DNA from: Chara braunii | Lineage: Eukaryota; Plantae; Charophyceae | Length of the DNA stretch: 64,000 nucleotides | Direction of reading: 5' to 3' | NCBI GenBank assembly: GCA_003427395.1 | Contig: BFEA01000007.1 | Location: 4,050,601-4,114,600 of the forward strand | In this document: positions 1,886 through 63,256 of the stretch, in pieces | Layout of the letters: every line of letters starts with the position of its first letter | Numbering within the stretch: position 1 is the stretch's first letter | The notes under the pieces: generated by a model | The model's database searches: none | Told to the model about the DNA's origin: nothing | Seen by the model: only the letters and a program-made list of their open reading frames with translations | Translations under genes and position numbers: made by a program

Positions 1886-2239
1886 ATGAACCTAGAAGCG
1901 GTCCCGGAAGGGATTAGCGTAAATAGTTATGGTGGGGTCGACGTGTGGTGTTATACCTTCTGCCTGTGGACGGGAGACTTCGACGTCGCCATCTATGTAG
2001 AAGAGGGGCGAGATCGGGGGGAGGATTTCCTCCGCGGATGGGAGGAGGCAGTAGGCAACTCTCGCGCGGAAAGAGGGGAGCTGCGAGGGTACGGGTTTAG
2101 ATACTTCTACTCACTAGGGTACCGGATTTATCCTAGGGGAGGACAAACCGCGCCGGTGATTCCGGACGCTTACCTCGACGGATCGGACGGGTGGAGAATA
2201 TTGGTCGCAATCATAGCGGAGGTAGTGGGGCGCCTATGA
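1886..2239 (+). CDS. Family-1 small protein, copy A (117 aa, unknown function)
   Basis: Intact ATG..TGA ORF. Clear paralogue of the next two ORFs (GGVDVWC, LWTGDFDVAIYVEEG, WEEAVG, YFYSLG, PVIPDAYLDGSDGW). Acceptor-like TTTCTTTGATTAG ends at 1880. Confidence 0.7.
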   Translation: MNLEAVPEGISVNSYGGVDVWCYTFCLWTGDFDVAIYVEEGRDRGEDFLRGWEEAVGNSRAERGELRGYGFRYFYSLGYRIYPRGGQTAPVIPDAYLDGSDGWRILVAIIAEVVGRL

Positions 2240-2593
2240 GCTTAGGGGTTTTGGAGTTTGAGCCGACAGGCATTAGCGTGGGAAGCCATGGGGGTGTAGA
2301 GGTATGGTGCTACAACTTTTACCTATGGACCGGGGACTTCGATATAGCACTTTACATAGAAGAAGGGACTGACCGAGAGGAAGCCTTCCTAAATAGTTGG
2401 GAAGAAGCGGTTGGCCATGCTCGGCTGGAGAGGGAGCTTTTAGGGGGCTATGAGATCAAATATTTCTATTCGCTAGGGTGCCGTACTTTCCGCCGAGGGG
2501 AACGCCCCGGTGATTCCGGAGGCGTATCTGGATGGGTCAGACGGGTGGAGAGTGTTGGTGGCGATCATAGAGGAGATAGTAGACAATATATGA
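2236..2593 (+). pseudogene. Family-1 copy B, frameshifted near 2500
   Basis: ATG 2236 overlaps the copy A stop (ATGA). MSLGVLEFEPTGIS...YFYSLGCRTFRRGE, after which the conserved PVIPEAYLDGSDGWRVLVAIIEEIVDNI* continues in another frame. The 215-aa ORF 2191-2838 in the track is an artefactual B+C fusion. Confidence 0.7.
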
Positions 2594-2955
2594 GCCTAGG
2601 GGTTTTAGAGTTTGAGCCGGGAGGCATCATCGTAGGTGACTGTGGGGGAGTAGATGTATGGTGCTTCTTGTGGTCCGGTGATTGGGACATCGCCCTCTAT
2701 GTAGAAGAGGGGACAAATTTAGGAGAAGGTTTTCTTAGTAGTTGGGAGGAGGTTGTTGGCCTGACGCAGCTAGAGAAGGAACTTTTGGGGGCTTACGAGA
2801 CCCGATATTTCTATACGCTAGGTTACCGTACCTTCTGACAAGGAGAGCGGCCCGCCCCGGTCATACCAGAGGCCTATCTCGACGGGTCCGACGGGTGGAA
2901 GGTATTGGTGGGAGTCATTAAGAAGATAGTGCAGAGCCAGGGAGGGCCTGGTTAG
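2590..2955 (+). pseudogene. Family-1 copy C, internal stop at 2836
   Basis: ATG 2590 overlaps the copy B stop (ATGA). After the TGA at 2836 (Arg in copy B), the frame continues QGERPAPVIPEAYLDGSDGWKVLVGVIKKIVQSQGGPG*. Confidence 0.7.
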
Positions 2956-3691
2956 GATTGTGGAAGCGGGAGTAGACGGCAGAGTGAAAATCGAGAAGGC
3001 TGACCTTCTCAAAGAACGAGAATGCTTTAGTGTTCCCTTGAATCATCGTACGGAGAGATACCTGGCGGGGCGTGAGAGAGGGGTGAAACTTGAGAAGGGA
3101 GTCTTTCTCTGGGCATGGTTCGCCGTAGGCATTTGGGAAGGAGATCAGTGGACCAGGAATAGACCTAGGAACGGGGGGAAGGCCCAACGAGTGGCATTTC
3201 GTGCCGAGGGCACGGTCTATCTAAGTCGGGAGGCGTGGGTTGAGTACGTCACCCACTGGGCCTTAGGGTGGTATCGGACGGACCACTAAGAGTTACGCGC
3301 GGGGCCTATCCTGAGGCGGATCTTCGAGGAGGTGCCCCTTCAACATAGCCTGCCTTTCCGCTTGAGGGTGACTTGCGTCAGGGACGAGGAATATCCTCGA
3401 GCTGCGGGTTGCGTCCAAGCTATATTCCCTTCTCATGTCTCTAGGAGTGTGTGTGGAGAGGGGACCGCGTACGAGAAAGTCGTGAGGTCTATAAGGCGGG
3501 AGAGAAGGAGAGGCCATTCCTTTCGTTCACTCCATTGGTTTTATTCCTATTGTGTGGACAACCCGGTCCCGTATGGAGTTAGAGCGGATCGGATCTGGGA
3601 GAGGATCTCTCTGGAGTCAGAAAGAGACGGTGAAGGTGGGCGAGACTACCGTTACCAAAGGGTGTTTGGAGTACGCCAGAAGGTAGGATAG
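2939..3691 (+). pseudogene. Family-2 protein copy D (~250 aa), internal stop at 3287
   Basis: Track ORFs 2960-3289 and 3332-3691 share one frame separated by a single TAA. Motifs GVFLWA, EGTVYLSREAW and LHWFYSYCVDNPVP are shared with E, F and G. Start codon uncertain (AGG at 2939). Confidence 0.6.
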
Positions 3692-3696
3692 AGTGA

Positions 3697-4380
3697 ATGG
3701 TTCTATTTGACCGGAGCATTGGTAGGTTTGTTGAGTCCTCTCTAGACGAGCGAGGAGTGTGTAGCTTAGTTCCAAGCAACGGGAGAATCCCCGATTGGAG
3801 AAGGTTAGAAGGAGGGGAGATTACAGTTGGAGGAAATTTCGTGTGGGTAGAGTCGGAGGCGGAAGAGAGAACGGTTGAGGTGCGTCTTAAAGTCACCTCG
3901 ATAATCTTCGTCAAGCCGGAGGCCTGGTCGAAGGTTATTGTACCCTTGGTCTTGGGCCAAGGGGGTGGGCTGGACTTACTAATCGGAGAGGCTAGAGAAG
4001 TCAGAAGGAGGTGGATAGATAGGGTCTGGGAGAAGTTTGAGTTTGTGGCGGCAGAGGCGGAGAGGTTCGCTAGGGCAGGCAAACTCTTGAGGGCGAGTTA
4101 CCCCGTGACTGTGTGGATCCCGGACTTTGTGTTCTCAAGTAAGAGCGAGGGAAGAGTGGTGAGACTCCTGAAAAGAGGAAGGAGTTTGGGATTACCACTT
4201 GGGGCCCTGTGGACACTGTGCACGCATTGTATCAATCCGGGAATCCCGCCACGCAGGAAACTTTGAGGTATTTTTTGGAGATTGGGGTCCCTGGAAAAAC
4301 CCTTTACCGTCTCACCGGAAAGATACCGCCAGTGGGTTTTCAAAACGGTGTCGGTAGATGGTAAGATTTGTGCTCAGTGA
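3697..4380 (+). pseudogene. Family-2 copy E, probable internal stop at 4264
   Basis: Motifs GNFVWV, TSIIFVKPEAW, LWTLCTHCINPGIPP. The frame continues past the TGA at 4264 (GIFWRL..., aligning with SIFERL in F and RIWERI in D) to the TGA ending at 4380. Confidence 0.6.
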
Positions 4381-5086
4381 GAACAGGGCGGTAGAGGCGA
4401 TAGAGGCCAGTAACGCGGGTAAAGTCTTGATCCCAGGAGACCCTCGCGTGACGCCCTACTGGATGAGCGTTAAGAAATTCGGAGTCATCCGGGAAGGCGC
4501 CTACATGTGAGTTCGAGCTTGCAGACTCACCTGGAAAGAAGGAGTGCAAAGAGGAGGTCCGCCTGACCTTGGTCGGTTCCTGGAGATTCGGGCTACGATT
4601 TTTCTCAACGAGGAGACGTGGACATAAATTTGGAGGGGTTTGGTAATTGGCCGAGAGACCCATACGGAGTACCGTGAGTCCGCGAGGCTGGTAGCAAACA
4701 ATCTGGTACTGGTTGATAACGAAGAGGGGACCTTCGAGTCGTGGACGCAGGTGTCCTTCGTCGAACCAGGCGAGGTCCCTCGCGTGTCCGGAGTCCTCCA
4801 CGCGGACCTGCCCCATTTCCTGACACGCTCATTCTTAAGAGACCCGGAGGAAAGAGTAGTGGCAGTACTTAGAGCCGCTCGGGAGTCCGGAGTGCGGACG
4901 AGAGGATTGTTCTGGCTCTATACGCGGTGTGTGGACGCTGGGGTTCCCCCAAGGGGAGAGCTAGCCTCTATATTCGAGAGACTGAGGGAGTTTGAGGGGA
5001 TCCGAGCTCACGTCGCGAATGTCCCACACGCCCGCCTCTTCGGGGAAGAGCAGGTGGCTAACAGGCGGGGGTACGAAGCTCGATGA
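4358..5086 (+). pseudogene. Family-2 copy F, internal stops at 4508 and 4625
   Basis: ATG 4358 is in frame with track ORF 4640-5086. Motifs GAYM*V, RATIFLNEETW, LFWLYTRCVDAGVPP. Confidence 0.6.
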
Positions 5087-5828
5087 TAAGAGGGATTCTA
5101 GGAACTCTTTGGGCCTCAATAGAGTCCGTGAGTGGGGAAGGAGAGGTTGTCCAAGTCTCATTACCCAAGGAAAGTCAAAGGGATCCGACAAGGGTCATTC
5201 GAAGGGAAGTAACCGACATCCGCCAAGGGAGAGCATTTGTTCGGTCGACGGTGAGCAGCGGAGAGGGGTTGGTGATCGGAGAGGCCACAGTGTTCCTTTC
5301 TAAGGATGGCTTTCTAGAGGTAGTCCACAACTTGAAATTGTGAGAGGACCCGCTTGTAGACGCACAGGCGATTCAAGAGCGTCTAGAGAGGCTTGTGGAG
5401 GAGGCAAGTCCTCGAGAAGAGTACCTTAGGATCTATCGAGTGACCTACGCGGGTTGGGAAGAAGTACCTCGGTTTTTTGACAGTGACCCCGTAGGACTCC
5501 CTCGTTTCATCCTTGAGCGAGTTTACCCCTCATAAACGACCAGGAAGGCAGTGGAACGTAGGATCTCGATCCTGAGCCAATTTCGATTCACAAGGTCGGA
5601 CATGCATTCCCTATTGACTTGGTGCCTTCAGAGTCCATATGAAGACAATTGGTCGTCTCTAGAGGGTCTGGCTATGCCTTTGAGGGCTAGGGACAACATG
5701 TGAAGGTGTCAACCATCACCTGGAGGTACTTAGGAAAGATCTATGAGGCGGGGTTAGAAGGATTAGACCCCTCGGATCTCATACGGGAAGCTATAGCGTG
5801 CCGTCGGAGAAGTTTGAGGCATGAGTGA
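5083..5828 (+). pseudogene. Divergent family-2 copy G, several stops and a probable frameshift near 5700
   Basis: ATG 5083 overlaps the copy F stop (ATGA). Motifs GRAFVR, EATVFLSKDGF, MHSLLTWCLQSP in one frame across stops at 5341 and 5533. Confidence 0.5.
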
Positions 5829-6021
5829 GCCCGACATCGATGAATTGGTGGGTCTAGAAAGGGTTAGGGCGGAGTTATACCGAATATTGACTCTTTGCTG
5901 GGAAGAGGAAAGGAGGGCGAGGCCAGGAGCCTTACGAAGGATCAAGTTGTTAGAGACTACCGCAATAAAAGTACTAGATGATTTAAAAGGGGAACTACTC
6001 TCTAAGAGAGCAGAGGCATGA
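5821..6021 (+). CDS. Small helical protein H (66 aa)
   Basis: Intact ORF overlapping the end of G. Its stop again overlaps an ATG (ATGA 6018-6021) just before the sequence switches abruptly to AT-rich DNA. Confidence 0.5.
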   Translation: MSEPDIDELVGLERVRAELYRILTLCWEEERRARPGALRRIKLLETTAIKVLDDLKGELLSKRAEA

Positions 6022-6589: not shown

Positions 6590-7625
6590 CTAGGGTTTCA
6601 CTCCATTAAGGTTTCCGCTTTGAGATCGCCCGCACGTGCACCGTTAACCCTTCTTGCCAGAGAAAATTTTGCATACTTATACATAGGTATATATTAAATA
6701 TTTCCAACGGGCTAGATGTTTTTATTGATCCTGTTTGGATATAAAAAAATAATTTTTTTAATAACTTAATTACCCTTAAAGTTGGTTGATCCTTTCTGTA
6801 CCTGCCGCACCCGATGTCTGTTTTTCCCGAAACTTGTCTTAAAATTTGGGGAAAATTCTCCCTTTCAACTTGCCTCTGGCGAGTAGTCACAATTTCCCTC
6901 TAACTTTGTTTATAAATTAAAACGATAAATAATTTTTCTTAAACTATTTTTTTGTATCAATCAAATCTGTATCTCGTGCCCCGATGCTCAGCTCCGAGCA
7001 CCGACGGTCTCAAAATAATAAGACAAACATACCTGCCAACATATGTTGGCCAAAGTCGCCCGCTATAAGAGTTAGAACCAAAAGAAGCCCAAATTTCCAA
7101 TTCAAATTAATTTTATCAAGTAGGGTTTTAAGTCATTAGGGTTTTGTTTTTGCGCTCGCTTACACGCGGACTATCGAACCTTTTTGACTAAGGAAACCAT
7201 GCACCCTTACTCTCAGCAGAACAACTGAATTTTTTGTCGGATTACAATTTTTTATTTATTCTTTTTTGATATTTTAAAAATTAGTAAAGAAAATCTGAAT
7301 TCGACAATTTAATTTCAATAGAGCTTATTGGACGGTATACCAGTCGCATAGGACGTCGGTTTTCCCGAGTCACATCTTAAAATGTCAGGAAAATTTAACC
7401 AAACAACTTCGCTCTCCGTATGCGGTTTCTATTTCTGCCCCAATTTTCAACAATATAATTTATTTTTTTTAAATAAAATTATTAATAAAGATGAAAAAAA
7501 TCAATAAATTTAGTATCTCCAGTTTCGGTGGTTAGTAGTTACTTCCAAAGGTCTCAAAAAGTTTTGAACAACGACAGGGTCATCTTTGATTAAGGTGTCG
7601 TTCGCTAAAAAGTGTCTGGATCTTG
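6590..7625. repeat. Degenerate ~530-bp direct duplication in an AT-rich block, probably the body of a non-autonomous DNA element
   Basis: Colinear shared words at ~530-bp offset: TAGGGTTT..CATTA.GGTTT (6591/7122), TTTTCCCGA...TCTTAAAAT...GGAAAATT (6822/7360), GGTCTCAAAA (7006/7550). Confidence 0.45.
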
Positions 7626-9479
7626 AGTTATGCAAAAAAAAGTTATTTAAAATAAAGATTAATGAGTAATCAAATAATCAATCAATAAGTTAATTAGTCT
7701 GTGTACCCCCGTTTGGTGGGAAAAGGCCGAGGCCTTGGGGGTGCAATCCCCTCCCCGGCAACAACACCAAAGTTGTGAGGGAAACATGAGGAGAGACTTC
7801 TATTGTTCGTTGAACCCAATGGCTATTGCGTCTGTCACTTGCTGCGCCCGCTTCTGGGGTTCTCAACTGCCGGTAGGGTGTTGTTTGTTACACACCCATT
7901 TCGAAGGTTAGGTTTGGAAACTTGAAAGGTACAACCGGAAAAGATGGAAAATAAATAAAATGATTTAGACTATTCGAGCGAGTAATTATGAAATCAGGGC
8001 TCAGAGCCTGCACAAACGTTTCTCTGTTGAATCTCGTATTAAAGAGATTAAAGTTTTTATTTATTTTAGTATAAGGATCAAGCAGAAAATAGTACGGTAG
8101 GAAAAGACAGAGCAGCAACAACCACTCACACCACAAAAAGGGTACGGAAAATGCACTCAGCAAGCGATATAAAACCGCTGATTTTGCACTATTGAGCGAG
8201 CTTGTTAACTATGCGCTTGTTCAAGGAGAGTCGGGTGCTAATGACTTTGCAAGATCTCGTCGGATGGGTGGTCGTCAGTCCTTTTTATTTCAACATCACG
8301 ATATTCTTTGGCCTCGCCCTACGCAATGCCGTCCTCCATTGGTTAGTTACCAGGGGGGAAAAAAAAAAAAAAAAAAAAAAATAAACCCTTAGTTTATTCT
8401 CGAGCGGATACTCAATTTTCACTGGTATCATCCGATTGGCTTATCTGTTTGAGGAAATGTTCAGTAAGCCCACGACCTAGGGAATAAGGTTTTTCAAGCA
8501 AGTTATCCCCTCAAGCTAGCCTGATTGACTGTTTGGATTGCTACATTCCTCAGTCGAGCTGGACACAGGTACCTGCTCGGTTCAGGGAAATTTGACTATG
8601 CCCTTCCCATTGAAAACAAAAGTAGGATGAGTAGTTGTGTCATGAGCTAGAACGTAGGAGGATTCACCGTCGTTTTCTCTCCTTTTATGCTTCACGGACC
8701 GAACTGTGGTTTCACCAATACAATAAAGGGAAAGGATCATCAAACGAAACATGGGATGGTGCACTTGCATGCTTGGTTTCTCTCCTTGACCCGCCAGAGA
8801 GGGGAAATGTCATGTACATGTCGCTGTCCTCTCTTATTCACCAAAGACTCTTGATACGCAAACTAATTTTGGTCAGCCCGTTAGTTTGTTAGTCAAGCTT
8901 GAATGTACCTGATCGTGATCAGGGCTGTTTATGTGTTCTAGAAAATAAGATTAAAATACAATAATAATAAAAGAAAAACCTTCTCTCGTCTTCACGAGGA
9001 GTTTCACTCTTTGTTGGTCGAACTAGAATGTACCTGTTCGTGATCAGGGTTGTTTATATGTGGATGAAAAATCAGATTAATAATGAATTAATTAAAAAAA
9101 AACTTCTTTTTTTACTCTCTGCCTGAAAAGTCTTCCCTCTCCTCCTAGTCCCGATTGTCTTATACATTTTTTTCTCGCTCTCTATTGTCCCTCTCGTTAG
9201 CCCCCCCCCCCATGCTCTTCTTTAATCCAGTGCATTGCCTCACGCCCTCCCTCAGCTCTTAATCATTCACAATCGTTCGGATACATACTTACCAAGCCAT
9301 CCTTAGATTAGAAGGTCCTACTTGGGAAGGGGATTTCTGATTTCCGTATTTTACACCCATGTTTTCATCCAGAGAAACGACCGATCCGCCTGCTGTCAGT
9401 TCACATGCGTGAAGCCGGTCTCAAGTCCTCACTCGTGTTTACTCTGCGCGTTCGACACAAATGTTCTTTTTTTCCCCCT

Positions 9480-9915: not shown

Positions 9916-10449
9916 ATCGAGATGGCTGCATTAGATCACTCCCGCCTGTGTCTACCCTGTGCTCCTCGATCCGCACTCCTCTATGCTCGCATGAGGAAGC
10001 AGCCCTAGCCAGTAGTCCATTGCTGGGTACGCCTGTTGTACTCCTGCGCACCACCAGCTGCAAGTCTGCATTATCAGGACCTATGAATGAAGTATAGTGT
10101 CCATGTCCCTTCGCCCCTTACATCAGCTCGACCTCCATGGCTAGTTGCTCGTTGACAGCGCTACCGTCTTCCCCCGAACATAATGCATATGTGTTGTATT
10201 CGAGTTTTCCAAAACAACGGGTCTTTGGAAAGTTAAACTTTTTTCTTCAAACACAAGGGCACTTTGAACATAACGCATATGTGTTATATTTGAAGAATAT
10301 GCATATGCATTATATTTGAATTTCACGAAGAGAAAATGATTGTATTCGAATATAACCTTTTTTTCCCCCGAAGGTCAACGCCTGCTCCGTCTTTGCCCTG
10401 GTGAATGGGACAGGCCCATGCAGGCCCGTAATCACAAATCACTGCCCGT

Positions 10450-10450
<1 letters not shown>

Positions 10451-10513
<63 letters not shown>

Positions 10514-10658
10514 NNNNNNNNNNNNNNNNNNNNNNNNNNNNNNNNNNNNNNNNNNNNNNNNNNNNNNNNNNNNNNNNNNNNNNNNNNNNNNNNNNNNNNN
10601 NNNNNNNNNNNNNNNNNNNNNNNNNNNNNNNNNNNNNNNNNNNNNNNNNNNNNNNNNN
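10451..10658. repeat. (CT)n microsatellite running into an assembly gap (N 10514-10658)
   Basis: Seen directly. Confidence 0.95.
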
Positions 10659-11281: not shown

Positions 11282-11305
11282 AGCATCATTTTTCCTTTTC
11301 TACTG

Positions 11306-12822: not shown

Positions 12823-14913
12823 CGACGGCGTTTTTTCGATCGCTGTAGCACAATACGGGGTACGCGTGGTAAGACGTTTAGAACTTATTCGTTAGATATC
12901 CAGGTCGAACTTTTAGAAGGCCGTCTATTTCCTCTTCTGCTTCCAAAACATTTTATTTTTTTTGTAATCACTGTGATCAAAGTACCAATCAAACCATTTC
13001 ACTACCACGGACATTCTATTCTACTTGACATATGACTGAACATCAGATTGTATAAAACTTATATAAGACTTATAATGAATATGAAGGTATTACCGCTGAG
13101 AACCCTTAACACTTTCACAAGTGTTATGTGTCCAAGACTCTTCAATATATCAAGTCCAGTTCAATCCCAAAATCACGCACAAAACATGCAAGGATAGTTC
13201 ACATGCCGTGCACTAACGGTGTCAACCATCAATCCACACCTCAGACATTGTCCCTCACTTCCCAAACCATGTATGACAGCTCTATCTTTCCTGAGATGTA
13301 AGCCCAGCCTCCTCAGATTTTTTCAAAGGACCCTTGAGAGTGACTAGGACCATTTAGGCAATGACCACATGTGACAGTTTTATTGACCACAGGGTTTGAC
13401 TTTAGACGTGGGTATGAAGTCAAGGGGAAAAAGTTGAATCGGCAATGACCGACATGTTATCGAGAGATAACGGAAAATTTGAGTCCTCTTTGTAAGACTT
13501 CTCCTTCAATTACAGTAGATCAAAACAAGGACCTGCACACACAGAGGTCAACAAAGACTCAACACCCCCACTCGATTTCTCACATGTAGATATCGAAGGG
13601 TCAAACCCTTAGATCTGGTCTGTGTGCTTTTGGGATCAACATCCCAAAGTCTATCCCTTTAGCTTCTACCTACCCTAAGTTGTCTGTCACTCTTGCCCTT
13701 TTTGTTCAAGGAGTCTCTTGCCTATGTCCTAAGTTGTCTTAGGGAACTCATATTTCTCCTTACTCTCAGTACTTGTATTTTCTCTCCTGCGGATAAACAC
13801 ACCCTTTGTTGCTTATGCGGTAGTCTAGCTAAGATTAATTCACGTCATTTCGCGGTTTCTCCTTGAGGAGGTTATTAATGAACTGAGTCTACGCGGAACT
13901 TTTTCTTTTCTACTTTTTTTTCCCCGCGGTACTTATCTTTTATTTTGCTTCTTTTAAGACTTTTAAAGTTCCTCCCGCTGGAGCACTCCATTCTTCATTT
14001 CTCTTCTTCTTGTCCTGACATACACAAGTAGTGGGTTGACTCACCCGGGAATTTTCCACTACTTGCTCAATTCCAGACAAAACGGTTAGTCAGATAAGTA
14101 GTCGAGTAGTTCCACGAGAGCACTCAACCACTAGCCTGTAAGGTAATAAGGAAACCGCACGACAGTTTCCCGTAACCAGCGTTGGAGTCAAACAGACGTT
14201 TCATCAATTTGTTACTTTAGTCAGATGAATGGCAAGGTAACTTCGCACGTTGAGTATGCCATCATCCACCTTAGTTAGCCCATGCAAGCAGTGTGACGAC
14301 CCCACGGGAGCCTCCATTACACAACTTTGTCTCTCAATCCCAAGCAAACAAGGTCCCTTCTCGGTTCTCCTAGGTTCCTTCCTTTCATCAGGCAGGATTA
14401 TTACTTCAATCGTATACCCTTTTTCATTTCGATACACTTCAGTCATGAAGAAAGTACAAACAGTATCTCACACACCCATACAGGCAGTCCAGTACAAAGT
14501 TGTAGCTTCTATGGGTATACGAGAACGGAATAGGTGACGCGTACCTCATGGTTCCCTGCCTCCAGAGTTCCTCCTGAACTCCGGCAATGCTCCCGCAATC
14601 GCCCTGTTGTACCTGCCTATTGGGTCATCCTTTTCCACAGAGCAGACATTTTTAATTTAGAGAGGTCATACTATTTCTAACAGATGTCAATCAACAAAGA
14701 ACGGTAATCATAATAATATTTTCGGACAGATAAGGATAAAAGGTGAACGAAGGGATTGGATCAAGGGAGAATGAAGGGGGATGGAGGAGGCAGGCTCCGT
14801 CACACGGTGACGATGTTCCTCTTCTCTCCAATGCCCCGCACTCTCCTCCTCTCTTACGCTTGTTTATCTCATGATGTTTCAATAGTGAAACAACAACCAA
14901 TAATAATAATAAC

Positions 14914-14962
<49 letters not shown>

Positions 14963-15589
14963 TTGTCGGTAACACTCTGTCAAGTATCTTGAATAACTTT
15001 TCAATGAGCAAGCAATCAATGGAAAGGGGAAAAACGTCTTATCGATGTACCACTTGTCATAAGTCTTCCCTCCATTTCCACTTCCTTTTACCCTTTTGCT
15101 TTCCCCTCACGGTCCTGGGTACAGACTCCCTCTCACTGCTCAGCACGCCTGCTCTTTAGAACCATGTGTGTGTATGCTTGTTACTCAACTTGCTTGCAAG
15201 GCCGTACGGGCACATGCTTGCTGCCCTGCATTTCCAGCCATTGTCCACCAGTGCCCCGTTGTTCGGCTGCAGCACACGTCATCCTGCTCCTGCGCGCGAG
15301 TGTGGTGTCAAGGCTGCTTTCTCTGCGGTCCGCAGCCATTCTGTGACATGTCAGCCTCAAGCAGCGCTTGCCCAAGGTGCAGCGACCCATGTCCTTGGTT
15401 TAGCCGCCCGGTGCAGCTACTTCCTCTGAGAAAACCTAGGGTGAGGCCCATGCTGCACTTCAACTAACTAGCCTGTAGCAACTGTCTGAGAACCACTTTG
15501 GAAATCGCTTAGGTAGGGGTTTTTCGTAGACACTTAGGTCGTCCCTCACTTATGGCGGCACGAGGCTGGTTGTGGTATCCGCATGTTAT

Positions 15590-15619
15590 TCAATAATAAT
15601 AATAAAAATACAAATCACG

Positions 15620-15670
<51 letters not shown>

Positions 15671-15696
15671 GTAATAATAATAATAATAATAATACA

Positions 15697-15727
<31 letters not shown>

Positions 15728-15741
15728 TAGTATAAATAACG

Positions 15742-15820
<79 letters not shown>
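15590..15820. repeat. Long interrupted (TAA)n tract (mirror copy 52615-52800)
   Basis: Seen directly. Other tracts lie near 11310, 12110, 14900, 16890 and 18255 (TTC), with mirrors in A'. Confidence 0.95.
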
Positions 15821-15824
<4 letters not shown>

Positions 15825-16886
15825 TATTAATATTAGTAGTTACCGACTTCAATCCACAAAACCACTTTAAAAGTTAGGAAGTTTGGCATCATCCGGAAAG
15901 CGAAACTTCATTGATACTAAATTAGCAGGGGACCAGAGCATTGTTTCCGAATGCTAGTGAGCATATTATCCCTTCCACTGGCATACGATTCCAGAGTCTT
16001 TTTTTCCTTTTGGAGCTTTGCGCCCAGACTACCATCACTCAGCTATTACCAGACCACGAATCAATAGCGCAAATGTTGAAGTCAGCAGCAGGGCTAAATT
16101 ATGTGAATAATAATGATTTTGTAGACCATCGCCAAGACCAGGTATGTGTTATCACATCATCAACCTCCCCTTTCTCTCTTCTTGTGTCATGTCTGTGTTT
16201 TGTTTGTTCTGTGTTTGTCTGTCTGCTTGATATTCTTTATTTTGTCCACATGTGTCTCGATGATTTGTGTGGTTGTTCGTCTGTTTATTTCTACTTGTAT
16301 GCTCATGTAAGTTTGTTTGTCTGTTCGTCCATTTGTCTGTGTTGGTTTTGTATGTCTGACGCTGCCTGTTGGCCTGAAGCTGTCAGTCTATACCTGTCTG
16401 TTACCGCATGGGACTGTGTGCACTACGGAGATGGAAAAGGGTCAGACCTTCGGCCGCACAAGCAGAAATCAAGAGGCAACGCCCAGTCATTCATTCATTC
16501 CTGCGTCAGCCATGCGGAAGTGTTGTTACAATGACTCGTGCGAGGTGGTCTGCAGTGAGCTCGAAGACGAAGTGGGCGAGAAAGAAGAGCTTAGCCATAG
16601 CGATAGGTTAGAAGCGGCCATGGCCGCCATAGTCGTAGTTAGAGTTTAGCGTGTGTGTGTGTGTATGTTCAGAATACCTCGTGTGGGATATTCAGGGTGA
16701 TCTTGTGTATGGGAACAAAGAGAGTTGTGTGGGCGCTGAGTCGCCATAGCCATCAAAGTGAACTTGAATCTGAAATGTGTTCTCGGTTACCGTATCTCTG
16801 AGATGTAAGTGGGCGCTTGTCGCCAGTCTGCTGCGCACATGTTTGCACGCATAAGAAGTGTGAATGAAAGCGAGTCTGACTTTCAC

Positions 16887-16947
<61 letters not shown>

Positions 16948-18985
16948 CAATCAATGCTAATGCAAGGAAGATGAGCAATAGTGAACTTCAACAATCAAAC
17001 AACATCATATACACAAGACCAGATAGTCGTGACCTCGAACCAACAACAAATTTGCCTCAGGAGTTTCACCAAATAAGAAGACACCAAGAGCTCATAATTG
17101 ACAATGCTGGTAAAGTCTCATTATCATCATTAATGAAGAACCAATGTTGATATCCTATCTGGTGCTCGTCGCCCAGACTACAGATGACAGATCCTATCTA
17201 GACTAGACTACAATGCCGAATGATGACGACAACAATGTTTCCGAAGTACAAGCATACAACGACCAATGTCGCATACTTCCAGCACCAGGTGTGTCTCTTG
17301 CCTCACTCACAACCTCGATCCCCCAAACACAAATGCCACATAGACCCAAAAGACCATCTGCGCCTCATCCTGCATAGCGCAGGGCTGCTTGGTTTAACCA
17401 TATATATACATATATATACATATATATTCCTAACATGCGAGGTTGGTTCCATACACACACACACACACTCTCGCACACGTACACGTATACATACACACAC
17501 AAGTGAGTACACACTCACACACACACACTCACAAATAGCAATGCTTGTTTCCCAGTTATAGTGCTAGATTCATTCGATTATTTTCATCCTATCTGTTCAA
17601 TTATAGTGAGTCGATCGTGAGACTCACATGCACACACACACACACACACACATATACTTGTATATTAGCGCACTTTCCTTTAGTGTAGCGGTAGATTTAT
17701 TCCATTTTGTTATGCTATCGATTGAAGTAGCGTGAGTATGGTCGCGCGGTTGGAGACTTACCTGTTCTAATTCGTCATGATGTGCGGCATACCGAGACCA
17801 CGGCACGGGGATACGACCGGCATCAACGTGCGTTCCAATCATGTCGGGCGGATGACGAGCCCAACCTTATGTTGCCATCATCATCCGCAAGGCCAGGTAC
17901 GTTGCTCTTTCCCCTTCTCTATCCCTCTACTTTTTTTTTTTTTTCTTCTTCTTCTTCTTCTTCTTATTATTATTATTATTATTATTATTGCGCCCTAATT
18001 CCACGCATGTTTCCTCCTTCACTCCCGATATGCCGCACGCCAATTTTAACCCCTGCTTTGTCGCTAACCCCATATCCGTTATTGCGCGCATGTTTCTCTC
18101 TCGTCGCGCTGCACCTGAGCTCTCCTTCCTCCTAGTTCGCGCTATGTCTCCTTCCTCCGCCCGATTTTCTCCCTTCCGTTCACTACCCCTGCCGTGTAGT
18201 CGACCTCCTTCCATTTGTGTTTACTTTCCTCCCTCGCACTAGTCCCTTCCCCCTTCTTCTTCTTCTTCTTCTTCTTCTTCTTCTTCTTCTTCTTCTTCTT
18301 CTTCTTCTTCTCTTTCTTTCTTCTTCCTCTCCCTCTTCTCCTCCTTCCTTCTTCTTCTTCTTCTTCTTCTCCTTCCTACGTGCTTCATTTCTCTCTCCTT
18401 CAAGCCGCGCCCCTCTTCTTCTCCTTCTTCTTCCTCCTCTTCTTCTGCGAGCCTCGTTTCTCTCTCCTCCAGGTCGCGCTACTCTCCTTCTCCTTCGCGT
18501 GTCGTCCTTGTCTTCTCCCTCGCGCGCTCCACGTCTTCTCCATCACGCGCTCCTCTTTTGCTATCCCTTGCGCACGACTTCCTCCTTCGCCTAGCTCTTG
18601 CGCGCGCCACGCTCTTACTCACGAACTCCGCGCTGTTACGGAGCTAGGTACGGCCTTGACAAGGCTCGCCCGAAACATTGTCGCCGCGGCGGGGTATCGA
18701 ACATTTTTCTCGGGAACAAATTTGCCCAAGATTCGAGGCAAATCCATTAAGGTAAGTTCAAGTAGAATCGTACAAGAGCAAAAGAAAGATAAAAAATAAA
18801 GAAAAAGAAACGAAAAAGACTTAACGAGAAATGCAAGAGAAAAAACAGGAATTTCAAAAAGAAAAAGAAAAAAAACAACTCTAACAGAATCAAACCTCTA
18901 ACTACCCTAGCTTGCAGCTTGCTAAGTGGTGGGCCCCCGTTATAGCAGGGGCTCATGTCTCAACTAACTTACTAACTGTAACTAA

Positions 18986-19026
18986 ATCCTAATACGGAGG
19001 TCGTGGGTTCAAGTCCCGGTCGCCCG
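18986..19026 (+). promoter_or_regulatory. tRNA-like 3' half / B box convergent with the hairpin RNA gene (mirror copy near 49652-49692, minus strand)
   Basis: GGAGGTCGTGGGTTCAAGTCCC resembles a tRNA variable loop plus T arm. No D arm or acceptor stem is recognisable. Confidence 0.5.
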
Positions 19027-19058
19027 GAGTCGGGTTAAAAACTCAGCTCCCTTATAGC

Positions 19059-19147
19059 AAAAAGGGAGTTAGCTTAAGGGCCGGGGCAGATTCGATCCCT
19101 ACGTCTCGAGCTTAACAATCTGCCCCAAATCCTACTGAGCTAGCTCC
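19059..19147 (-). ncRNA. Putative Pol III hairpin small RNA (~89 nt), in repeat A
   Basis: TATATA at 19179-19184. A-box-like TAGCTCAGTAGG, B box GATCGAATC, terminal stem GGAGCTAGCT/AGCTAACTCC, inner stem GGGGCAGATT/AATCTGCCCC, T5 terminator. Confidence 0.6.
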
Positions 19148-26586: not shown

Positions 26587-26638
26587 GACCATTTCTCGAT
26601 TTATGCGTGTCATCCTTGCGCATGGGCCATGCTAATCT
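26587..26638 (-). pseudogene. U6: U6 snRNA 3' half (52 nt) followed by a T tract
   Basis: Minus strand AGATTAGCATGGCCCATGCGCAAGGATGACACGCATAAATCGAGAAATGGTC matches the plant U6 sequence as I recall it, with one substitution. The 5' stem-loop and ACAGAGA box are absent. Confidence 0.92.
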
Positions 26639-55024: not shown

Positions 55025-55685
55025 AGCATCATTTTTCCTTTTCCACTGTTGTTATTATCATTATTATTATTATTATTATTATCTTTATTATCAACTCTCT
55101 TATTTTGATCTCCTCCTTCTGTCGTTTCGTGAGGAGTCAACGATTCGTTTATGAACCTTGAGTGCAAACTGGTGGCCTAGACTGGCCCGGCCTCTCGCTT
55201 ATCAACTTGTCTCTGAACTGTTCGGCTGGGCGCCACACAGTGGGACACCAAAAATGGGGCAACCCGCGGCCGCACCAGTAGGAGACTCATCACCTCCTGT
55301 GAGGGGTCATGAATCCACTCCTTGCCATTGGACACGGATACCCTTCAATAGTAGCCCGGCGGCGGGTTTTGAAAGGGGGAGGACGACCATCGATATCCCG
55401 TTATGGGACCACTGTGTCGAAAATGTCATCGTCGTACGCAAAAAGAAAATGAAAGGACTGTTGGCTGACTATAAAAAGCCTGCATGTGCTACGACCGTTG
55501 GGGTTCAGTTTCTTACTCCTTTTACATTAATTTATTATATTTTATTTCGTTTTAGTGCATTCTATTAATTTTAGAACTATAGGTTACTAACATGCTGAAC
55601 TCCAGAAATTTCCCCATTCATAACACAGGGTTCACGATATGTAACGATCCTATAAAGGATGAGAGAAGGCGAGTCAGGTCTCGTT
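55025..55685 (+). repeat. Repeat C, copy 2, truncated by repeat B'
   Basis: Colinear with 11282-12645 apart from indels. Confidence 0.85.
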
Positions 55686-58600
55686 ACGCCGAATACTGTG
55701 AACTGAGGGGGGAGCATTGAGCGGTAGCGTGAGAGAGAGGGAGTCCGTCTGTGCGCTTGTGCCGAGTGTTAGAACCGAGCTATTTTGGAACCGACAGATA
55801 AGTACCGTATACGTATATTTGGAAACGGGGCAGCTATGGTGCGCAACAGCGGGCTATATGGATATAGGCCAAGATACCTCCAATTCCTTTGGAGGTGGGA
55901 GTGAAGGTCAGGGGAAGGGCCAATAATGACTGTTATTCTGGGCTACAGCCGTTGAATCAGGAGGTCGGGCTGAAAGTGAATTTGGAAGGGGGGAAAGAGG
56001 CGGAAATCATAGCACATCAGGGTTACAAGCGGCCATTACTGAAGCCAAGGACCGGGCAGAGAGAAGGTGCAGACGAGACGGGGTCACGGAAGAAATGAGG
56101 TGACTGTCTTATACTTGGAGGGAGAGACCTCGACTGACACTACAAAGAGGGAACAACTGCACCTGGACTGAGACACGGAAGCTGAGAGTGAGGAGAGTGA
56201 CCGGGAGGTCCGGACCCGGTCCTGGTATGGACTGGACCATTGGCGGCGGGACCACCCACCCGCCGAACCTGTGGAAAGTGGCCCAGAGGCCAACTCGAGA
56301 CGACGAAGGGACCGGAGCTGCTAGACTGAGGAACACGGGTCAACTAGCGAGAACGGTTACGAGAGAGGGAGGGAGATGCGGGCAGGTGCAAGATCAAAGG
56401 GGGGACGTGAGAGAGAGAGCAGCGCCTGCGGGGAAAGAAGTGGGAGTGGAGACGATCGGTGCTTGGAAAAAAAAGGAATATCTTCAGCATTTTCTCCGAT
56501 CAGGAAACATATGCGTATCAACCTGACCTCTATCAAGGAACGCTCCAGCGCATACATACTGACGAAGTGTATACGAGGAAAGCCAACTCGATGGTGACAT
56601 GAGTCAAAAGGGGCTTCGCAAGATCGGGTGAGGCCGTGTCAGGCGGTGGTGGCCAAAGATAGGACCGTTGTGACGGACATAATGTGCGTGACTAGTAGTG
56701 GTTGACGTATATCGTCGACGCAAGGGCCTGCATCGTTTGCGGAGGAGAGAAAGTCACCAACGAGGGTGCGGCAAGTGTGGTTGATCCTCTCCCGCCTCGC
56801 CCACGTCATAGCCTGAACGTCACACTCGCACGAGAAGTACTGCAGCAATCATCGTGTCTTCCTCTTTTCCTAATTTGGATGGGGACCAGATAAAAGGAAG
56901 TGGGTCTTAGACTCTTAGCAAGGGTCTTAGCACGGAGCGCTGTTGGTGACTCTGCTTTGGTTCCTTTATGGAGCCGCCAGGAGAGTTGACAAAGTTTTGC
57001 TAAAAAGGCTATGAACCGTGGGCGCCAATTTGACTGCGAAATGAGAGGGAACGGACGCACCCCTTCTTGTTGACGTCACCTGTTTTTATTAGATGACTTC
57101 GCCTGGCCAAGCTATAGGGGAATCTAGTTATGTGTGCGCTGTGCTGCATATGTATAATTAGCGTGACACTGCATTGGTCATCGTCGACGCAAAATTGATA
57201 AGGAGGTGTGCATGTCGGAGGAGGTCATTACTTCAAGAAAGTGGGATCAAAACAATGCCTGCAAGGGGGGCGTTCAGAAGCAGTAAAGCTAGTGACGATG
57301 AAGATTAAGGGGCAAGCCACGCTACGGCCGTCGGTGAGTATGAGCGAGAAGTGAGAAGGGGATGACCATCTATTTAGGCGACGATGACGTACGCTGATCA
57401 AAGCAGTGTGATCACGTAAGATGGGAGTTTATTTTGGCAGTTGGTGACCTTCGGGGGACGAGCGATTAGAGAGAGAGAGAGGGGCAGTGTTTTTGTTGTT
57501 GACGTTGGCCCTCGACGGTCATATCAAAAGAGAAGGGGCCATAATCAAGAGAGGGAGTACATGAGAAGAGAAGACGAAGTCGTTTTGGGAGTCGTTGAGG
57601 TCAGCTATTAATCATTGCGTCGGTAGCTTATCTGGATGCTGGCTCAGAGTGTCAGGTGCCGGCTAGAGTAAGATCTTGTCGTGCGACTTGGACCGTGGTC
57701 ATGTCCTCTCAGATACGCAGGCAAGAAGAAGGGCTCCGTATTCTCACATGAGATTTTCATGCTTGGCCAGTGTGACGACGACTGCACATATTTTGCGCCC
57801 TGTATTGGCAACCGTCCTGCATCACACCTTCACTAGGACCAAAGCGTGCTGAATTTACAGGGATGTGTATTGGCAGACATCCCCTTTGCCTCCATACTCT
57901 GGTTGTAAAACACCTTTTTGCGCTATTAGGTGATATCAGCTTGTGGTCTGTACACACGCTCGAGGGTTTTTACTTTTTACTAGCCAATGCGCGATTTCTA
58001 ACAAACGGAATTGGGGAGATAATGATTGTAGGTTAGCTGGTTTAATAGTCGAAGTTAGACAAGGGAACAAAGCATGCAAGGTGGACTATGAGCGTTAGTT
58101 GAGGTTCTACGTGGTTTAATCTACACTCGAAGAGGTGCCTTTGCCGCTAATTACAGTCTGAAAAGCAGGTGTGGAGGTCGAGTACCAGCTACGTATACTC
58201 GGGACATGAATTGTTGTAACGGTGTTGGGAGTTAAGGGGATCATTTAGTTGACTATCCTTCCGAATGACTTTAATTGGGCCAGAGAAGCTATCTCATTAT
58301 CCCATTCAGCCCAAGTCTTCCCTTGAAGATTTACTATTAGGGTAAAGGAAACGCTGAGATGAGAATGATTAGTGACTATTAATAATGATGTATTGATGAT
58401 GCATTGAATGACCGTGAATTTCGACAGGGGGAACCTTGTCTCGAGTGGACTCTTCTTCCTGCACGTGGGTTTCGACTGATGCCCTCTCACCTGTTGCAGT
58501 GGGAACTGAACGAACCTGATTGTAAGCTTGCATCATCGCCTCCTAATCAGGGGGTAGGGGGGGCTTAATAAAAATTCCGTTTTGATTATTGGTTTGGAAT

Positions 58601-61106
58601 AAGCAGGCTCCTTATTAAGATAAATCACTTAAGTTTACAACAAGCTTTCACCCCTTAACTGATGAGTAGGCGAAAGTCGGTTTTGGGAAAGATAGCATAC
58701 CTTCTGGCCAAATACTTGTTTGATGGGGATTAGTGAGCCCTTTGTCACAATATGACCATGATCGAAAGAGGGATGAAGAGGTGTGATCGAGAATAATTTT
58801 ACTCAGATACTAACCAAAGAGTGATAGTTGAAGGTGTATGGATCTGATGAATTTTTACGTTGATCATGCTTTGACAGTTGAAACTCTGTCGGGGTTAAAA
58901 CCTATCTCTATGGGGTCAATCCCTTTTTGCGCCAGCCTGTCAGCTTCAACAGTGAGACATGGAAACTTAAAGCAACACTTGCACGAACGTATACGTGTGT
59001 ATTTATTTATACAAAAATGTACAAACTCTCAATCACCGCCTACTGATGGTATATACTCACTAGACCATGAAAATATACTCGCGCATCTATGTAATGCGTG
59101 AGCAGGGCGTAAAGTGAGTAAAGTTCCCCACAAAGTTTGAGTGAGTGATGATGAGGTAGCCTCATCGCGGGCAGCAACTCGTGTTGTGTTAAACGAGGCA
59201 GCACTATGTACTACTTCAGTCAACCAATGAGACTTTCAGTGCTTTGGAGTCATGCCGCCCTCCTCGGCATCTGTTAACGATCTGTGTAGACTTTTTTTTC
59301 TCCGCTACTCAAATAGGCTCCTCTATCATCAATAGTACACCCTGTACGCTATCCTGGTAAGGCCTCCAAATTAAACTGGTGACCGAGTCCGGAAAGCTAC
59401 TAGCTGCCTCAGATACTCGAGGGCCATACGAAGGGCGGGTCATGGCAAGTACAGTGGCTTAGCCTTGTAGCCCGAGTACATCACAAATACACATCGCCGA
59501 TTGGGACAGACTTCATAATAATTCCTAATTATTTGTAGATTCTAAATATATCTAGTCGTTTGAAAATTTTGTCTCATAGCGATTCCCACCGCCTGAAAAC
59601 AGATCATGGTCCGGATTAACTAGGTCAGAACCCGTCGCGACATTTTGGTGAAATCTTGAAATATAGACTTCATGCTTAAGCATCCGAGGTACTGAGTCAA
59701 ATCTGTAGAGTTGAGTAAGGGTTTGTCCCTTACTTGGTTTTGTCACTCCGGGGCTAAATAGTTTTCTCACAAAGAGTGACCTTCCCCATATAGGACTGGT
59801 CGACCGCTTTCGGGTCTGCACTGAGCACATAATACTCAGCTAGCTTCTAGGGGTCTAGGGCCTCTGGGAACCACAAATAGTCCTTGTACTGGAGTCCAAA
59901 CTAGAGCACGTGCTGGATTATGAGCTTAGAGTTTGTCATGCCGAATTGGATCGTGCACTGGTGATGGGTCTGTTTGATCTCTCTACGGACTGAAACATAA
60001 CGAGCCCCGATAATGAATAATCATTGACGAGCCTAGAGAAAATAAGAAAACTCTCACCCGAGCTCGATTCTTATCATTCTATAACGCCTCCAGGGAAAAA
60101 TTATCTCCTATGTTTGTGCAAGTCGACTGTTGGAGACAATTATCCTACTGCTTCCATCGCTTCGTTTGCAGGAGAGCCTAGTTGTTTTACTCAGTTTTGA
60201 TGTAATCTCAAAATCAAATCGGTGCGTGGATACGATTCAGTCGTCTTCAGCCCTTGAAACAATAATGAACACCTCACCAAATCGTCGTCTGGTGGGGTTT
60301 AGCCTGCAGAACAGACCCCATCTTAATGTCTGAACAACCTCAACACTAGAGTTAAGAATACTCAGCAGTTAGCAGATGCTCAAACCAACTTCGACAACCC
60401 CGAGTTAAGAAAATTCCCCTACTTCGTCTGTGAAGCTCACTAAGCATATCGACAGTCTATCCTATCCGCGGGCTAGCTGATTGGAGGCACGACAAAATCA
60501 TGAAGAGGAAAGGGATTCTCGTAATAAAATACAATTTGAGCAGAGACAAGAAGGAGGGATGGAAAAAATGAGCATGTCGGGACATGGTCTTGCATAAATA
60601 GATTCAGAGGGAGCAGCCAGTCCAAATAGTCAAGAAGGAGAAACATATCGAGTATGTATCCTACTTCTATGGCCACAATGACAAGCTGCATAACACTGAT
60701 TCATTTCTAAAGGCGGTGGAGCAGGCAAGGGCAATGCTAAGGTGAACGCAAGCATACTTGGTTTCCTCTCTTGAGATACCCAGCAACGCTTCAAATATTA
60801 AACACCAACCAACAAACAAATAGCTCTTTCGACGTTCCGCAGTTAATTGACCAGTGTTCAGTGACTTATTATCCTAACGTCACCCAATCATTTGAGTCGC
60901 TATAAAGCCTCAATCAGCAGTCAATCAACTTTCAATCAGCAATCAGTCAACAGTCAATCAGTACTCGATTGACATTCATCCGAGATACTCAAAGCTCCCT
61001 GTCATAATCAAGCAGCGATTGGTTGCTCTTTTTTGCCTCATCAAATTTCCAAGCATTACTCTCATAGAAGAGTGGAGAGATCGGTTTCAACAACTAGCAT
61101 CAGCAC

Positions 61107-61796
61107 ATGAGCGCAATCCTGTCATTTTCAATGCAAGAGACTGTCCTAGCCAGTCTCAACAGGATAGCCTCCAACGATGTTTTTCAACATTGGTACGTCA
61201 GTGCAACTGGCTTCAAGCAAGGAGAACTATCTATCTTTGTAGTTTATACTGAGTTCGCAAAAAGTGTTATTCATGATTTAAGGATCTACCTTATGAAAGG
61301 CAAGGGGACTCGTGAGCACTTTGATTCAGTTTGGATCTCAACAGTCAGGTACCTCGAGGAGAAAGAGAGAGAGTTTGACGAGAATGGTACCAAGCTGATC
61401 CGTAGCTTTGGACCCAAACTCTACACTGATTATCCCAGACATCCGGTTCCCTTCCTCCTCACAGACGGCTCATGCTGGAGCGATTTGGTGGATATGACCA
61501 AGAGGTATATTTCTCCTGCAGAGATTGACTATGAGGCAGTGACCGAACCATCCGAGTTCCGGCATCTCAGACGAGGGATCTTCTCTCGGCCATATATTCC
61601 TACTCTATGGAAGAAATTATGTGTTATTATCAACTTTCGTATTATGGGATTAGGATGGGAGTGCTCAGAACTTGCAGACTTCAGGCGGCTCTACATCCAG
61701 ATACCACGGCCTCAAAGGGTACGGAGACTTGGCTCGAAGCACAAGAAACGCACAACAAACTTAGAGATTGAATGTGTGATTCATGTGGATGAGTGA
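61107..61796 (+). CDS. Family-1 copy a' (229 aa, intact): family-1 domain plus C-terminal extension
   Basis: Longest clean ORF in the window. HDLRIYLMKGKGTREHFDSVWISTV...EREFDENG...SFGPKLY...PVPFLLTDGSCWSDLV aligns end to end with copy A at 1886. Confidence 0.75.
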   Translation: MSAILSFSMQETVLASLNRIASNDVFQHWYVSATGFKQGELSIFVVYTEFAKSVIHDLRIYLMKGKGTREHFDSVWISTVRYLEEKEREFDENGTKLIRSFGPKLYTDYPRHPVPFLLTDGSCWSDLVDMTKRYISPAEIDYEAVTEPSEFRHLRRGIFSRPYIPTLWKKLCVIINFRIMGLGWECSELADFRRLYIQIPRPQRVRRLGSKHKKRTTNLEIECVIHVDE

Positions 61797-62599
61797 GGAC
61801 TCTTGACAAGTGTTGGGCATGCTCTCTTTATATGTACTCTCTGAGATTATTATGAGTTCTCATTTTTTCCTAATTTATTTTTGTCATTGTTCAAGTCAGT
61901 TAGCCTTGCGTCGTTAACTCTACCTTTTGCTTGATGTTTATGCTCTTTTATGATTCTGCCATAGTTCTCAAAACTAGAAAAATTGATAAATTTGATGCAT
62001 GTATGACATACCAGAATTTTATGATCATTATTTGCATGATTCTTTGTTGTTCCGAATCAAAATGAAAGATTCATAAGACCAGGGATCGGCGAAGACCGTA
62101 ATTGAAGGGTCTCGCTCGAAGCCGGACGCACACAACAGGAAGGGATTTGCTTTAATTTATATGTTTTATTTATTGCAAACATCATTCAAAATCCTGCGTG
62201 CCAGCCTGTTGGCTTTCTGGTCGCCTGAAGATGCCCGACTAGAAAAAGTGCGACAAAAATGACGCCGTTGCTGGGGACATTAAAAATTTTCGTGTTCGGA
62301 ATGAGCCAGGGTCAGCATCTATTTTGAACTTTGCTTAGGACTTGAGAACTGTTGACAATGTGTGAATTTTCATATTAACTCTGATATCTTGAGTAAGTCA
62401 TTATTTTTATTGGAAGTTCTTAGTTGCTAACTGGGTCTTATTTCTGCATGTGTGAGATACTGCACTGGACTGGAGAATGAGATTGATATTATTCATTGGG
62501 GAGGATCAGGCTTCATCATAAGTATGCCTTAAGCTCTTTACGTCCTTGTAAAACTGAGAAAGAATGGAATGAGTCAAAATTCGGGAGACTCCATCAAGA

Positions 62600-62990
62600 A
62601 TGCTAACTACTGATCCATTGAAAGAGCTCTCAAAGTTAACAATTAAAGGGATATTCCCCTATCAGAATGAGCAATATTCGGTTTATTACTCTGGTAATTC
62701 GATCATCTGTGTAGTGCTAGCTCGCTTCTTTGAGGGAGATATCTATGATATTCGTCCTTATGTCAAGAAGGGAGACTACAACAATGGTGAGGTCTTTAAC
62801 CGGCTATGAGAAATCATTTTTTCATCTATCTATAACAAGAAGACAAAATTGATCAAGCAAAGGAAGAAACTAGAATGGGGGCTAATGTCAGTAACCTATG
62901 AGACAGTTTCAATTCCTTCGATCCCTAACAGTTACTGTGAAGGAAGTAAGCGGCCAATAATCAAACATGGTATTAAAGTGGAAGGAATAA
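62600..62990 (+). pseudogene. Family-1 copy b' (TGG>TGA at 62807)
   Basis: Homologue of 41512-41904. Confidence 0.65.
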
Positions 62991-63256
62991 GTGGGTTGTC
63001 ATAAGAACAAAAGGAATTTCAACAGAGGAAATCGAACAGCGACGATGAGGATTTGGTAGAGGTTCGGGTCCAAGTAAATAGAAAGTTGAGTGTCTCCTAA
63101 GGTTATTGAATGTTTTAAGTAAGAGAGAAGTGTTTTCATATGAAGTTGTCAAATATAAAATGGTCGAGAGTTGATGGGAACAAGAACGATTCCATGTTAT
63201 GACATTCTACTTCATCGAGTTGTACACATATGATATGAGGATCTATATTCCTAAGG
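62991..63256 (+). pseudogene. Family-1 copy c', truncated
   Basis: MTFYFIELYTYDMRIYIPK, then unrelated sequence. Confidence 0.5.

Follow-up and report, generated by a model that had tools for sequence, protein, structure and literature searches.

In the alga Chara braunii, a stretch of 64,000 nucleotides (nt) of contig BFEA01000007.1 (positions 4,050,601 to 4,114,600; called the window below) contains tandem arrays of short open reading frames (ORFs) that encode a domain of ~120 amino acids (aa). These arrays had been noticed in an original prediction made from the letters of the window, which interpreted them as accessory genes of very large Ty3/Gypsy retroelements. By combining profile searches, an analysis of codon substitutions and structure modelling, we found the domain to be, on all that its sequence tells, a real coding family with proteins of ~120-230 aa. 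The retroelement interpretation was partly supported, and in the following the arrays are described first, then their relatives, and finally their relation to the neighbouring Gypsy element.

Domain arrays in the GC-rich block and the AT-rich cassettes

The domain occurs in the window in 11 copies or fragments, A-C, a-e and a'-c' (Table 1), in line with the about 11 (3+5+3) that had been counted; all 11 have profile support, which is marginal for e, and the peptides quoted for A, a' and b in the original prediction are present in these copies. Each domain unit is a separately terminated ORF and the units are arranged head to tail on one strand, with A, b and a' as the only intact ones.

Copies A, B and C repeat with a period of ~354 nt; relative to A and C, the deletion in B puts the C-terminal third of the domain in another frame. 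The GC-rich block to which they belong (1-6021, GC 54%, G-skew +0.25) has its 5' part beyond the window and ends abruptly at 6021, where a T13 tract is followed by 25%-GC DNA, and its plus strand is an ORF nearly throughout from 1886 to 6021. It also holds a second tandem paralogue family, D2, with copies at 3290-3688, 3697-4263 and 4628-5083, to which the segment 5083-5700, with two in-frame stops, probably adds a further one. D2 has no Pfam match, and that it might be a divergent version of the ~120-aa domain was ruled out by profile-profile comparison (hhalign probability 0.1%).

In the AT-rich cassettes, the a-type protein consists of the domain followed by a conserved tail of ~85 aa. The broken copies c and d remain recognizable, c as three colinear profile pieces (E 2.5e-3, 2.9e-6 and 1.2e-5) and d as pieces at E 0.04 and 3e-9, and a profile from which c, d and e had been left out still detects all three colinearly (E 3e-9 to 0.04).

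Table 1. Domain copies, repeats and retroelement remnant of the window; positions are those of the window except where locus L002 is named.
Feature	Position	Strand	Description
Copy A, GC type	1886-2239	+	intact ATG-to-TGA ORF, 117 aa
Copy B, GC type	2236-2593	+	frame changed by 5-nt deletion
Copy C, GC type	2590-2955	+	in-frame TGA at 2836-2838
D2, second tandem paralogue family	3290-5700	+	GC-rich block, directly 3' of A-C
Copy a, a type (domain and ~85-aa tail)	43391-42710	-	8-nt deletion near 43140, ATG lost
Copy b, b type	41904-41512	-	intact ORF, 130 aa
Copy c, c type	41426-41034	-	full length, one frame, two in-frame stops
Copy d	41030-40567	-	frameshifted
Copy e	40591-40265	-	N-terminal two thirds recognizable only; marginal, E 0.016
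Copy a', a type	61107-61796	+	intact ORF, 229 aa
Copy b'	62600-63004	+	stop at 62807-62809, indels at 62949-62963
Copy c'	63082-63256	+	cut off, N-terminal part only
Repeat X	41249-48429	-	X-start ORF remnant, ~4.6 kb, a, b, part of c
Repeat X'	55681-63256	+	second copy of X, inverted, 88.6% identity
X-start ORF	48331-48035; 55851-56297; L002 9995-10525	-; +;	~100-170 nt from 5' end of X
Repeat Y, 6 kb, microsatellite-rich	14132-20229; 54427-48432	+; -	two inverted copies, ~91% identity
Decayed Ty3/Gypsy gag-pol	32187-38873	-	many stops

Three separate cassettes had been proposed. X and X' (~7.2 kb, 7 kb apart), however, represent a single repeat in opposite orientations, which reduces the number of independent cassettes in the window to two. 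The homology between X and X' stops inside copy c, at 41249, and correspondingly inside c'. Their identity is even along the length (85-94%) without a rise over the ORFs, and dN/dS between them (0.46-1.8; median of non-coding control windows 0.61) gives no signal of selection, as expected of dead copies; both have therefore decayed neutrally since the duplication. A palindrome (63278-63366; 74 nt, 86%), which may be a foldback insertion, lies 3' of the end of the X' homology.

Near the 5' end of X, a conserved ORF (the X-start ORF) is found, which is intact, with 176 aa, in another C. braunii locus, L002 (scaffold BFEA01000349.1). It has no Pfam match and is not chromodomain-like, and the idea that it could be the chromodomain end of a pol located upstream was discarded. 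In L002, a nearly intact chromovirus (101-4532) precedes the X-like unit and comprises gag with CCHC, protease (PR), reverse transcriptase (RT), RNase H (RH), integrase (IN) and chromodomain; a related copy is present in a further locus, L001 (68944-72873).

Next to X, one copy of the repeat Y is located. The Y copies share the end ...TTTGCTCCGA, X begins 1-2 nt past one such end, and Y-like fragments are seen near a-type units in L001 and L002. Y as a long terminal repeat (LTR) of a giant element was ruled out: its copies are inverted and not direct, its ends are not TG..CA and no primer-binding site (PBS) is present at the Y/X junction.

Homology, selection and relatives of the domain family

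Copies a' and b are clearly similar (BLASTP E 4e-8); single BLASTP comparisons of GC with AT copies are weak (E 0.001-0.016), and no DNA similarity was found between the GC and AT cassettes. When a profile of a' and b was run against the 1656 six-frame segments of the window, the GC copies came next after the profile's own kin (E 6e-5 and 2e-4), and hhalign aligned the profile of the GC copies with that of the AT copies over 76 columns at a probability of 94.4% and an E of 8.8e-8. With this significant alignment, the earlier claim that a protein pattern is shared without DNA similarity holds.

Substitutions between the paralogues follow the reading frame. The pairwise differences among A, B and C are distributed over the three codon positions as 25/25/70, 34/35/61 and 17/23/52; synonymous sites are saturated (proportion of differing sites, pS, 0.66-0.84) and the nonsynonymous proportion (pN) is 0.16-0.26. 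Omega is ~0.11 for B and C, and the off-frames give 0.9-2.1. Likewise, a' and the intact a-type ORF of L002 (14701-15375), which are 57-63% identical, differ by 63/52/129 over the codon positions (pN 0.25, pS 0.76). Such strong purifying selection among the paralogues indicates that the domain is a real protein. Moreover, the paralogue types are only ~20% identical to one another, whereas each has an orthologue elsewhere with 38-67% identity (38% for b with P0003; 48% for c and 42% for d with P0006), so that the array of distinct paralogues must be old. In this respect the earlier description of an old, selected and diversified family proved right. A chance motif, or a non-coding repeat resembling a protein domain, would agree with the weak pairwise similarity of GC and AT copies, but is effectively refuted by the profile-profile alignment, by the excess of third-position substitutions, which is confined to the reading frame, by the intact orthologous ORFs elsewhere and by a confident structure model (see below).

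Among 1.84 billion representative proteins, six relatives were detected with the profile. Two are C. braunii gene models (GBG69355.1 and GBG80537.1), each tens of kb long, in which RT fragments have been fused by prediction; they are the only gene models of the family in the proteome, both chimeric with RT, and of these spliced database models (P0001 and P0002) only parts were used. The other four are intact ORFs (121-161 aa) of a metagenome assembly, ENA ERZ27272674, in which they lie on short contigs (556-667 nt). Single-sequence searches with A and with a' gave no homologue within a length window that excluded the chimeric models of 679 and 759 aa. At the DNA level, the repeats of the window are 75-86% identical to C. 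braunii loci, which places the window in Chara, in keeping with a streptophyte origin; a-type units occur in at least three dispersed places and copies on at least three scaffolds.

No family match was obtained in Pfam, PHROGs or NCBIfam, nor with the PDB sequence profile, and when all 22 family members were compared with Pfam, nothing came up at E <= 0.1 beyond two isolated weak matches, among them no homology to PMD or Transposase_28. IMG/VR, JGI metagenomes and GTDB genomes yielded no relatives in searches for which the full alignment was too divergent for the scan tool. AlphaFold2, provided with a 22-row alignment, predicted a fold with a pLDDT of 82.6 and a pTM of 0.75, in the order helix, three long strands, long helix, two short strands, helix. 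Foldseek found no counterpart for it in PDB (best E 0.12) or in BFVD (best E 0.033), TM-scores being at most 0.38. The domain thus stays unassigned, as it had been called. Its alpha-beta-beta-beta-alpha core recalls small nucleic-acid-binding folds; no such match was obtained and no inference is drawn from it. No Chara-specific literature on the domain family or the arrays was found either. As far as sequence and fold comparison reach, the family is previously undescribed, restricted so far to Chara, and matches no described family.

The ORFs of the arrays are tightly packed. ATGA stop/start overlaps are present at 2236 (A/B), 2590 (B/C) and 5083, and ATGAGTGA at 5821. On the metagenome contigs, the following ORF begins 1 nt past the stop in L005 and overlaps by 50 nt in L006, while contig L004, in which the b-type stop lies within TTATGAGTGA, repeats the b-to-c order with a spacer of ~80-90 nt. 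Same-strand ORFs with overlapping or nearly abutting stops and starts, as expected of a polycistronic set, are thus present, and this packing, by its ATGA overlaps and its spacers of 1-90 nt, suggests polycistronic expression with reinitiation. Another type of short ORF is seen 3' of the P0004- and P0005-type copies (L005 492-584, starting MSTGVYIPDAGESFHFELY; L006 508-642, starting MPDEAHVPAEGETFHIELY) and has no counterpart in the window.

The neighbouring Gypsy element and the nature of the repeated unit

The decayed Gypsy element retains a degenerate zinc knuckle near 37900, RT (35621-35034), RNase H (34928-34350) and, around 33700, the zinc motif of an integrase. With 32.2 bits, RVT_1 exceeds the Pfam cutoff (29.6), RNase H reaches a tblastn E of 2e-17 and the integrase H2C2 match is weak (E 0.002); no gag Pfam match and no LTRs were found for this element in the window, and a search for its relatives, aimed at their 5' regions, gave a single match, on a 901-nt contig that offers no flanking sequence. 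Array a-e (43391-40265) and the pre-gag region with gag-pol (39791-32187) are adjacent in the assembly and of the same sense. The earlier statement that a cassette sits directly upstream of a Gypsy gag-pol is therefore correct as to sense and adjacency, but the assembly is interrupted by a gap (38874-39424), which separates the gag-like sequence from the end of copy e at 40265. A direct repeat of 55 nt (91% identity) brackets this gap (38819-38873 and 39655-39709), and the stretch between its two units is GC-rich with an A-rich tract at ~39575-39630. Most likely, the gap lies inside a short insert or a local duplication in the pre-gag region. Because the 55-nt repeat is direct, the scaffold orientation at the gap is probably right; continuity and frame across it are unproven. 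The bracketed segment with its A-rich tract resembles a short retroposed insert or a local duplication. An apparent ORF of 400 aa at 38579-39781 was discarded as spurious, since it runs through the gap.

The reading that we favour, with a probability of roughly 0.4, is that long repeated units, which form a family of their own, carry the arrays as gene cargo, and that the arrays are not a constant 5' part of the Gypsy element beside them. A unit of the AT lineage would consist of the X-start ORF, ~4.6 kb, a, ~0.8 kb and then b-c-d-e, and one of the GC lineage of A-B-C followed by the second paralogue family, while the gag-pol next to copy e would most simply be an adjacent or nested insertion. 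The copies in the window are dead, selection having acted in the active lineage before these copies arose. A single polycistronic RNA may serve for the translation of the ORFs, through termination-reinitiation or through leaky scanning, and the diverged paralogues may each bind a partner of their own, which could be a host factor or nucleic acid of the element itself.

Somewhat less probable, though possible, is that the array forms the accessory module between 5' LTR and gag of a giant Ty3/Gypsy element, like the upstream ORF of Tat/Ogre, and was perhaps exchanged between Gypsy lineages. The original prediction went in this direction, with a Gypsy family of ~17 kb or more that carries the array 5' of gag. 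Tat elements are indeed known to have ORFs upstream of gag (PMC4408406), and accessory ORFs are common to diverse retroelements in bdelloid rotifers (PMC5408684). Within the window, the array immediately adjoins gag-pol on the same strand, and the 55-nt repeat on both sides of the gap suggests local continuity; in L002, the a-type ORF lies 350 nt upstream of PR-RT-RH-IN, which could reflect an internal deletion. Against such a module, no direct repeat pair flanks 48.4-32.2 kb, no LTR pair encloses array and gag-pol in the window, the initial 300 nt of X lack a partner, and no tRNA-iMet-type PBS was found, the gap at 38874-39424 leaving a loophole. In L001, a-type units in tandem (7018-7693 and 9992-10624) are situated upstream of the 5' LTR of a Gypsy element whose pair of ~650-nt LTRs (13404-14052 and 24704-25360) excludes them. 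In L002, the Gypsy following the intact a-type ORF begins at ~15700, inside the protease, and is of another lineage. Between loci, the a-type ORFs are 57-63% identical, whereas the neighbouring RTs share 24-31%. Beyond the GC cassette, the DNA is AT-rich and non-coding and has no gag, and CpG depletion differs as well, with an observed/expected ratio of 0.43 for gag-pol, 0.59 for the array and 0.71-0.77 for X. A position of the array that is shared by most members of one Gypsy family was not found in the three loci (the window, L001 and L002; X' breaks inside c'), and in L001, in L002 and at the GC cassette the copies do not stand 5' of a gag within a full-length element. In view of the missing LTR pair and PBS, L001 and L002, the RT discordance, the GC block and the CpG values, we regard a 5' module fixed in Gypsy as possible, but prefer another reading.

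Several observations weigh against the favoured reading of a separate cargo-bearing unit. Same strand and adjacency are the expected look of a 5' accessory module, each of the three loci has a same-strand Gypsy pol downstream, and the ~480 nt from the stop of e to the first pre-gag ORF contain no LTR outside the gap, which could itself hide one. Furthermore, neither a replication gene nor terminal repeats are visible in the unit, which was not seen to encode an RT, integrase or transposase; its mobility is deduced from dispersed copies only, and some of these copies are local duplications (X and X'; the tandem a-units of L001). The Chara DNA examined amounts to ~200 kb.

Two further explanations have a lower standing. 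The arrays could be clusters of small, fast-evolving host genes of Chara, possibly polycistronic, locally duplicated and now decaying in DNA rich in transposable elements (TEs). Purifying selection, the absence of detected transposition genes or termini, and duplication that looks local rather than clearly transpositional (the inverted X and X'; the tandem a-unit of L001) would suit host genes. We nevertheless hold this to be unlikely, as most copies are pseudogenes in repeat-dense DNA and are dispersed over at least three scaffolds, the two C. braunii gene models are both chimeric with RT, and stop/start overlaps and 1-nt spacers are unusual in nuclear host genes. Even less likely are remnants of an endogenised virus-like element, neither Gypsy nor caulimovirid, with compact same-strand ORF sets that include multigene families. 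This would account for the GC block at 1886-6021, where two tandem families follow each other wall to wall on the same strand with overlapping stops and starts, and which lacks the CpG depletion of the remaining window (0.9 against 0.43-0.77), but IMG/VR, BFVD and PHROGs contain no match, the block is not associated with a capsid, polymerase or integrase, and B and C are already broken. As a bolder speculation, which we consider improbable, Chara may harbour undescribed long mobile elements, giant Gypsy derivatives or separate virus-like ones. These would carry, as cargo, operon-like series of genes for diversifying small proteins that belong to two or more unrelated families; one RNA would serve for the translation of such a series by reinitiation, and the proteins would act against host defences such as silencing.

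Some further features of the window were recorded. Runs of N occur, besides the gap discussed above, at 10514-10658, which touches no domain copy, and at position 53031. A short interspersed repeat with internal sub-repeats, similar to short interspersed nuclear elements or miniature inverted-repeat transposable elements, is present twice in the gag-pol remnant (32924-33314 and 36552-37051). A match to U6 snRNA at 26578-26639 on the minus strand (52.7 bits) covers 62 nt only and is probably a fragment or a retropseudogene, and two small dispersed repeats (87-90% identity) are located at 12127-12642/55049-55685 and 12647-12833/29465-29651/23102-23241.

Comparison with known accessory genes and implications for Chara

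Extra ORFs of plant Gypsy elements lie upstream or downstream of gag-pol, most of them between pol and the 3' LTR (PMC7264820), and the Tat ORFs upstream of gag resemble PMD or Transposase_28 (PMC4408406). With these eORFs and aORFs of plant Ty3/Gypsy, including Tat/Ogre, the Chara arrays have in common that they are non-gag, non-pol, lineage-restricted ORFs of which the function is not known and which are conserved at the protein level; at one place, the array also has the same sense as gag-pol and stands 5' of gag. They differ from Tat/Ogre by having at least five diverged tandem paralogues instead of one ORF, by a domain without a PMD or Transposase_28 match, by a charophyte host, and by their position, since location inside an LTR-bounded element is contradicted in L001. 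Neither PMC4408406 nor PMC7264820 describes five or more old paralogues in tandem, or a block that combines two unrelated tandem families. In bdelloid rotifers, an accessory ORF module likewise stands beside retroelements of different lineages, with discordant divergence of module and RT (PMC5408684); these are animals with other protein families, and there the ORFs were established as members of the elements, whereas for the Chara arrays such membership is no more than possible.

VANC proteins and viral silencing suppressors had been named as possible analogues. TE-borne, fast-diversifying accessory proteins would fit the diversification of the paralogues; VANC genes are single genes of VANDAL DNA transposons, and no viral sequence or fold match was found (BFVD and PDB values above). 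Polycistronic or reinitiation-dependent gene sets include the ORF strings of caulimoviruses and the AUGA-type overlaps between ORF1 and ORF2 of some non-LTR retrotransposons, and polycistronic nuclear genes have been reported from green algae. In Chara, the ORFs likewise follow each other on one strand, with ATGA overlaps or only a few nt between them, but none of the hallmark proteins of these systems is linked to the arrays.

To our knowledge, accessory genes are common in plant retroelements, usually as single ORFs, and almost none of them has a known function. Against this background, the Chara family stands out by purifying selection combined with a confidently predicted fold without a relative, by at least five ancient paralogues in a fixed order, and by stop/start overlaps that are unusual at a eukaryotic nuclear locus. 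The retroelement framing is plausible but unproven. If the arrays are element-borne, they would constitute a tractable multigene accessory family in a streptophyte mobile element and a natural test bed for polycistronic translation in a lineage sister to land plants; if they are host genes, they would form a Chara-specific orphan family. Either way, the profile allows the annotation of this family in Chara genomes, where it now sits in chimeric gene models.

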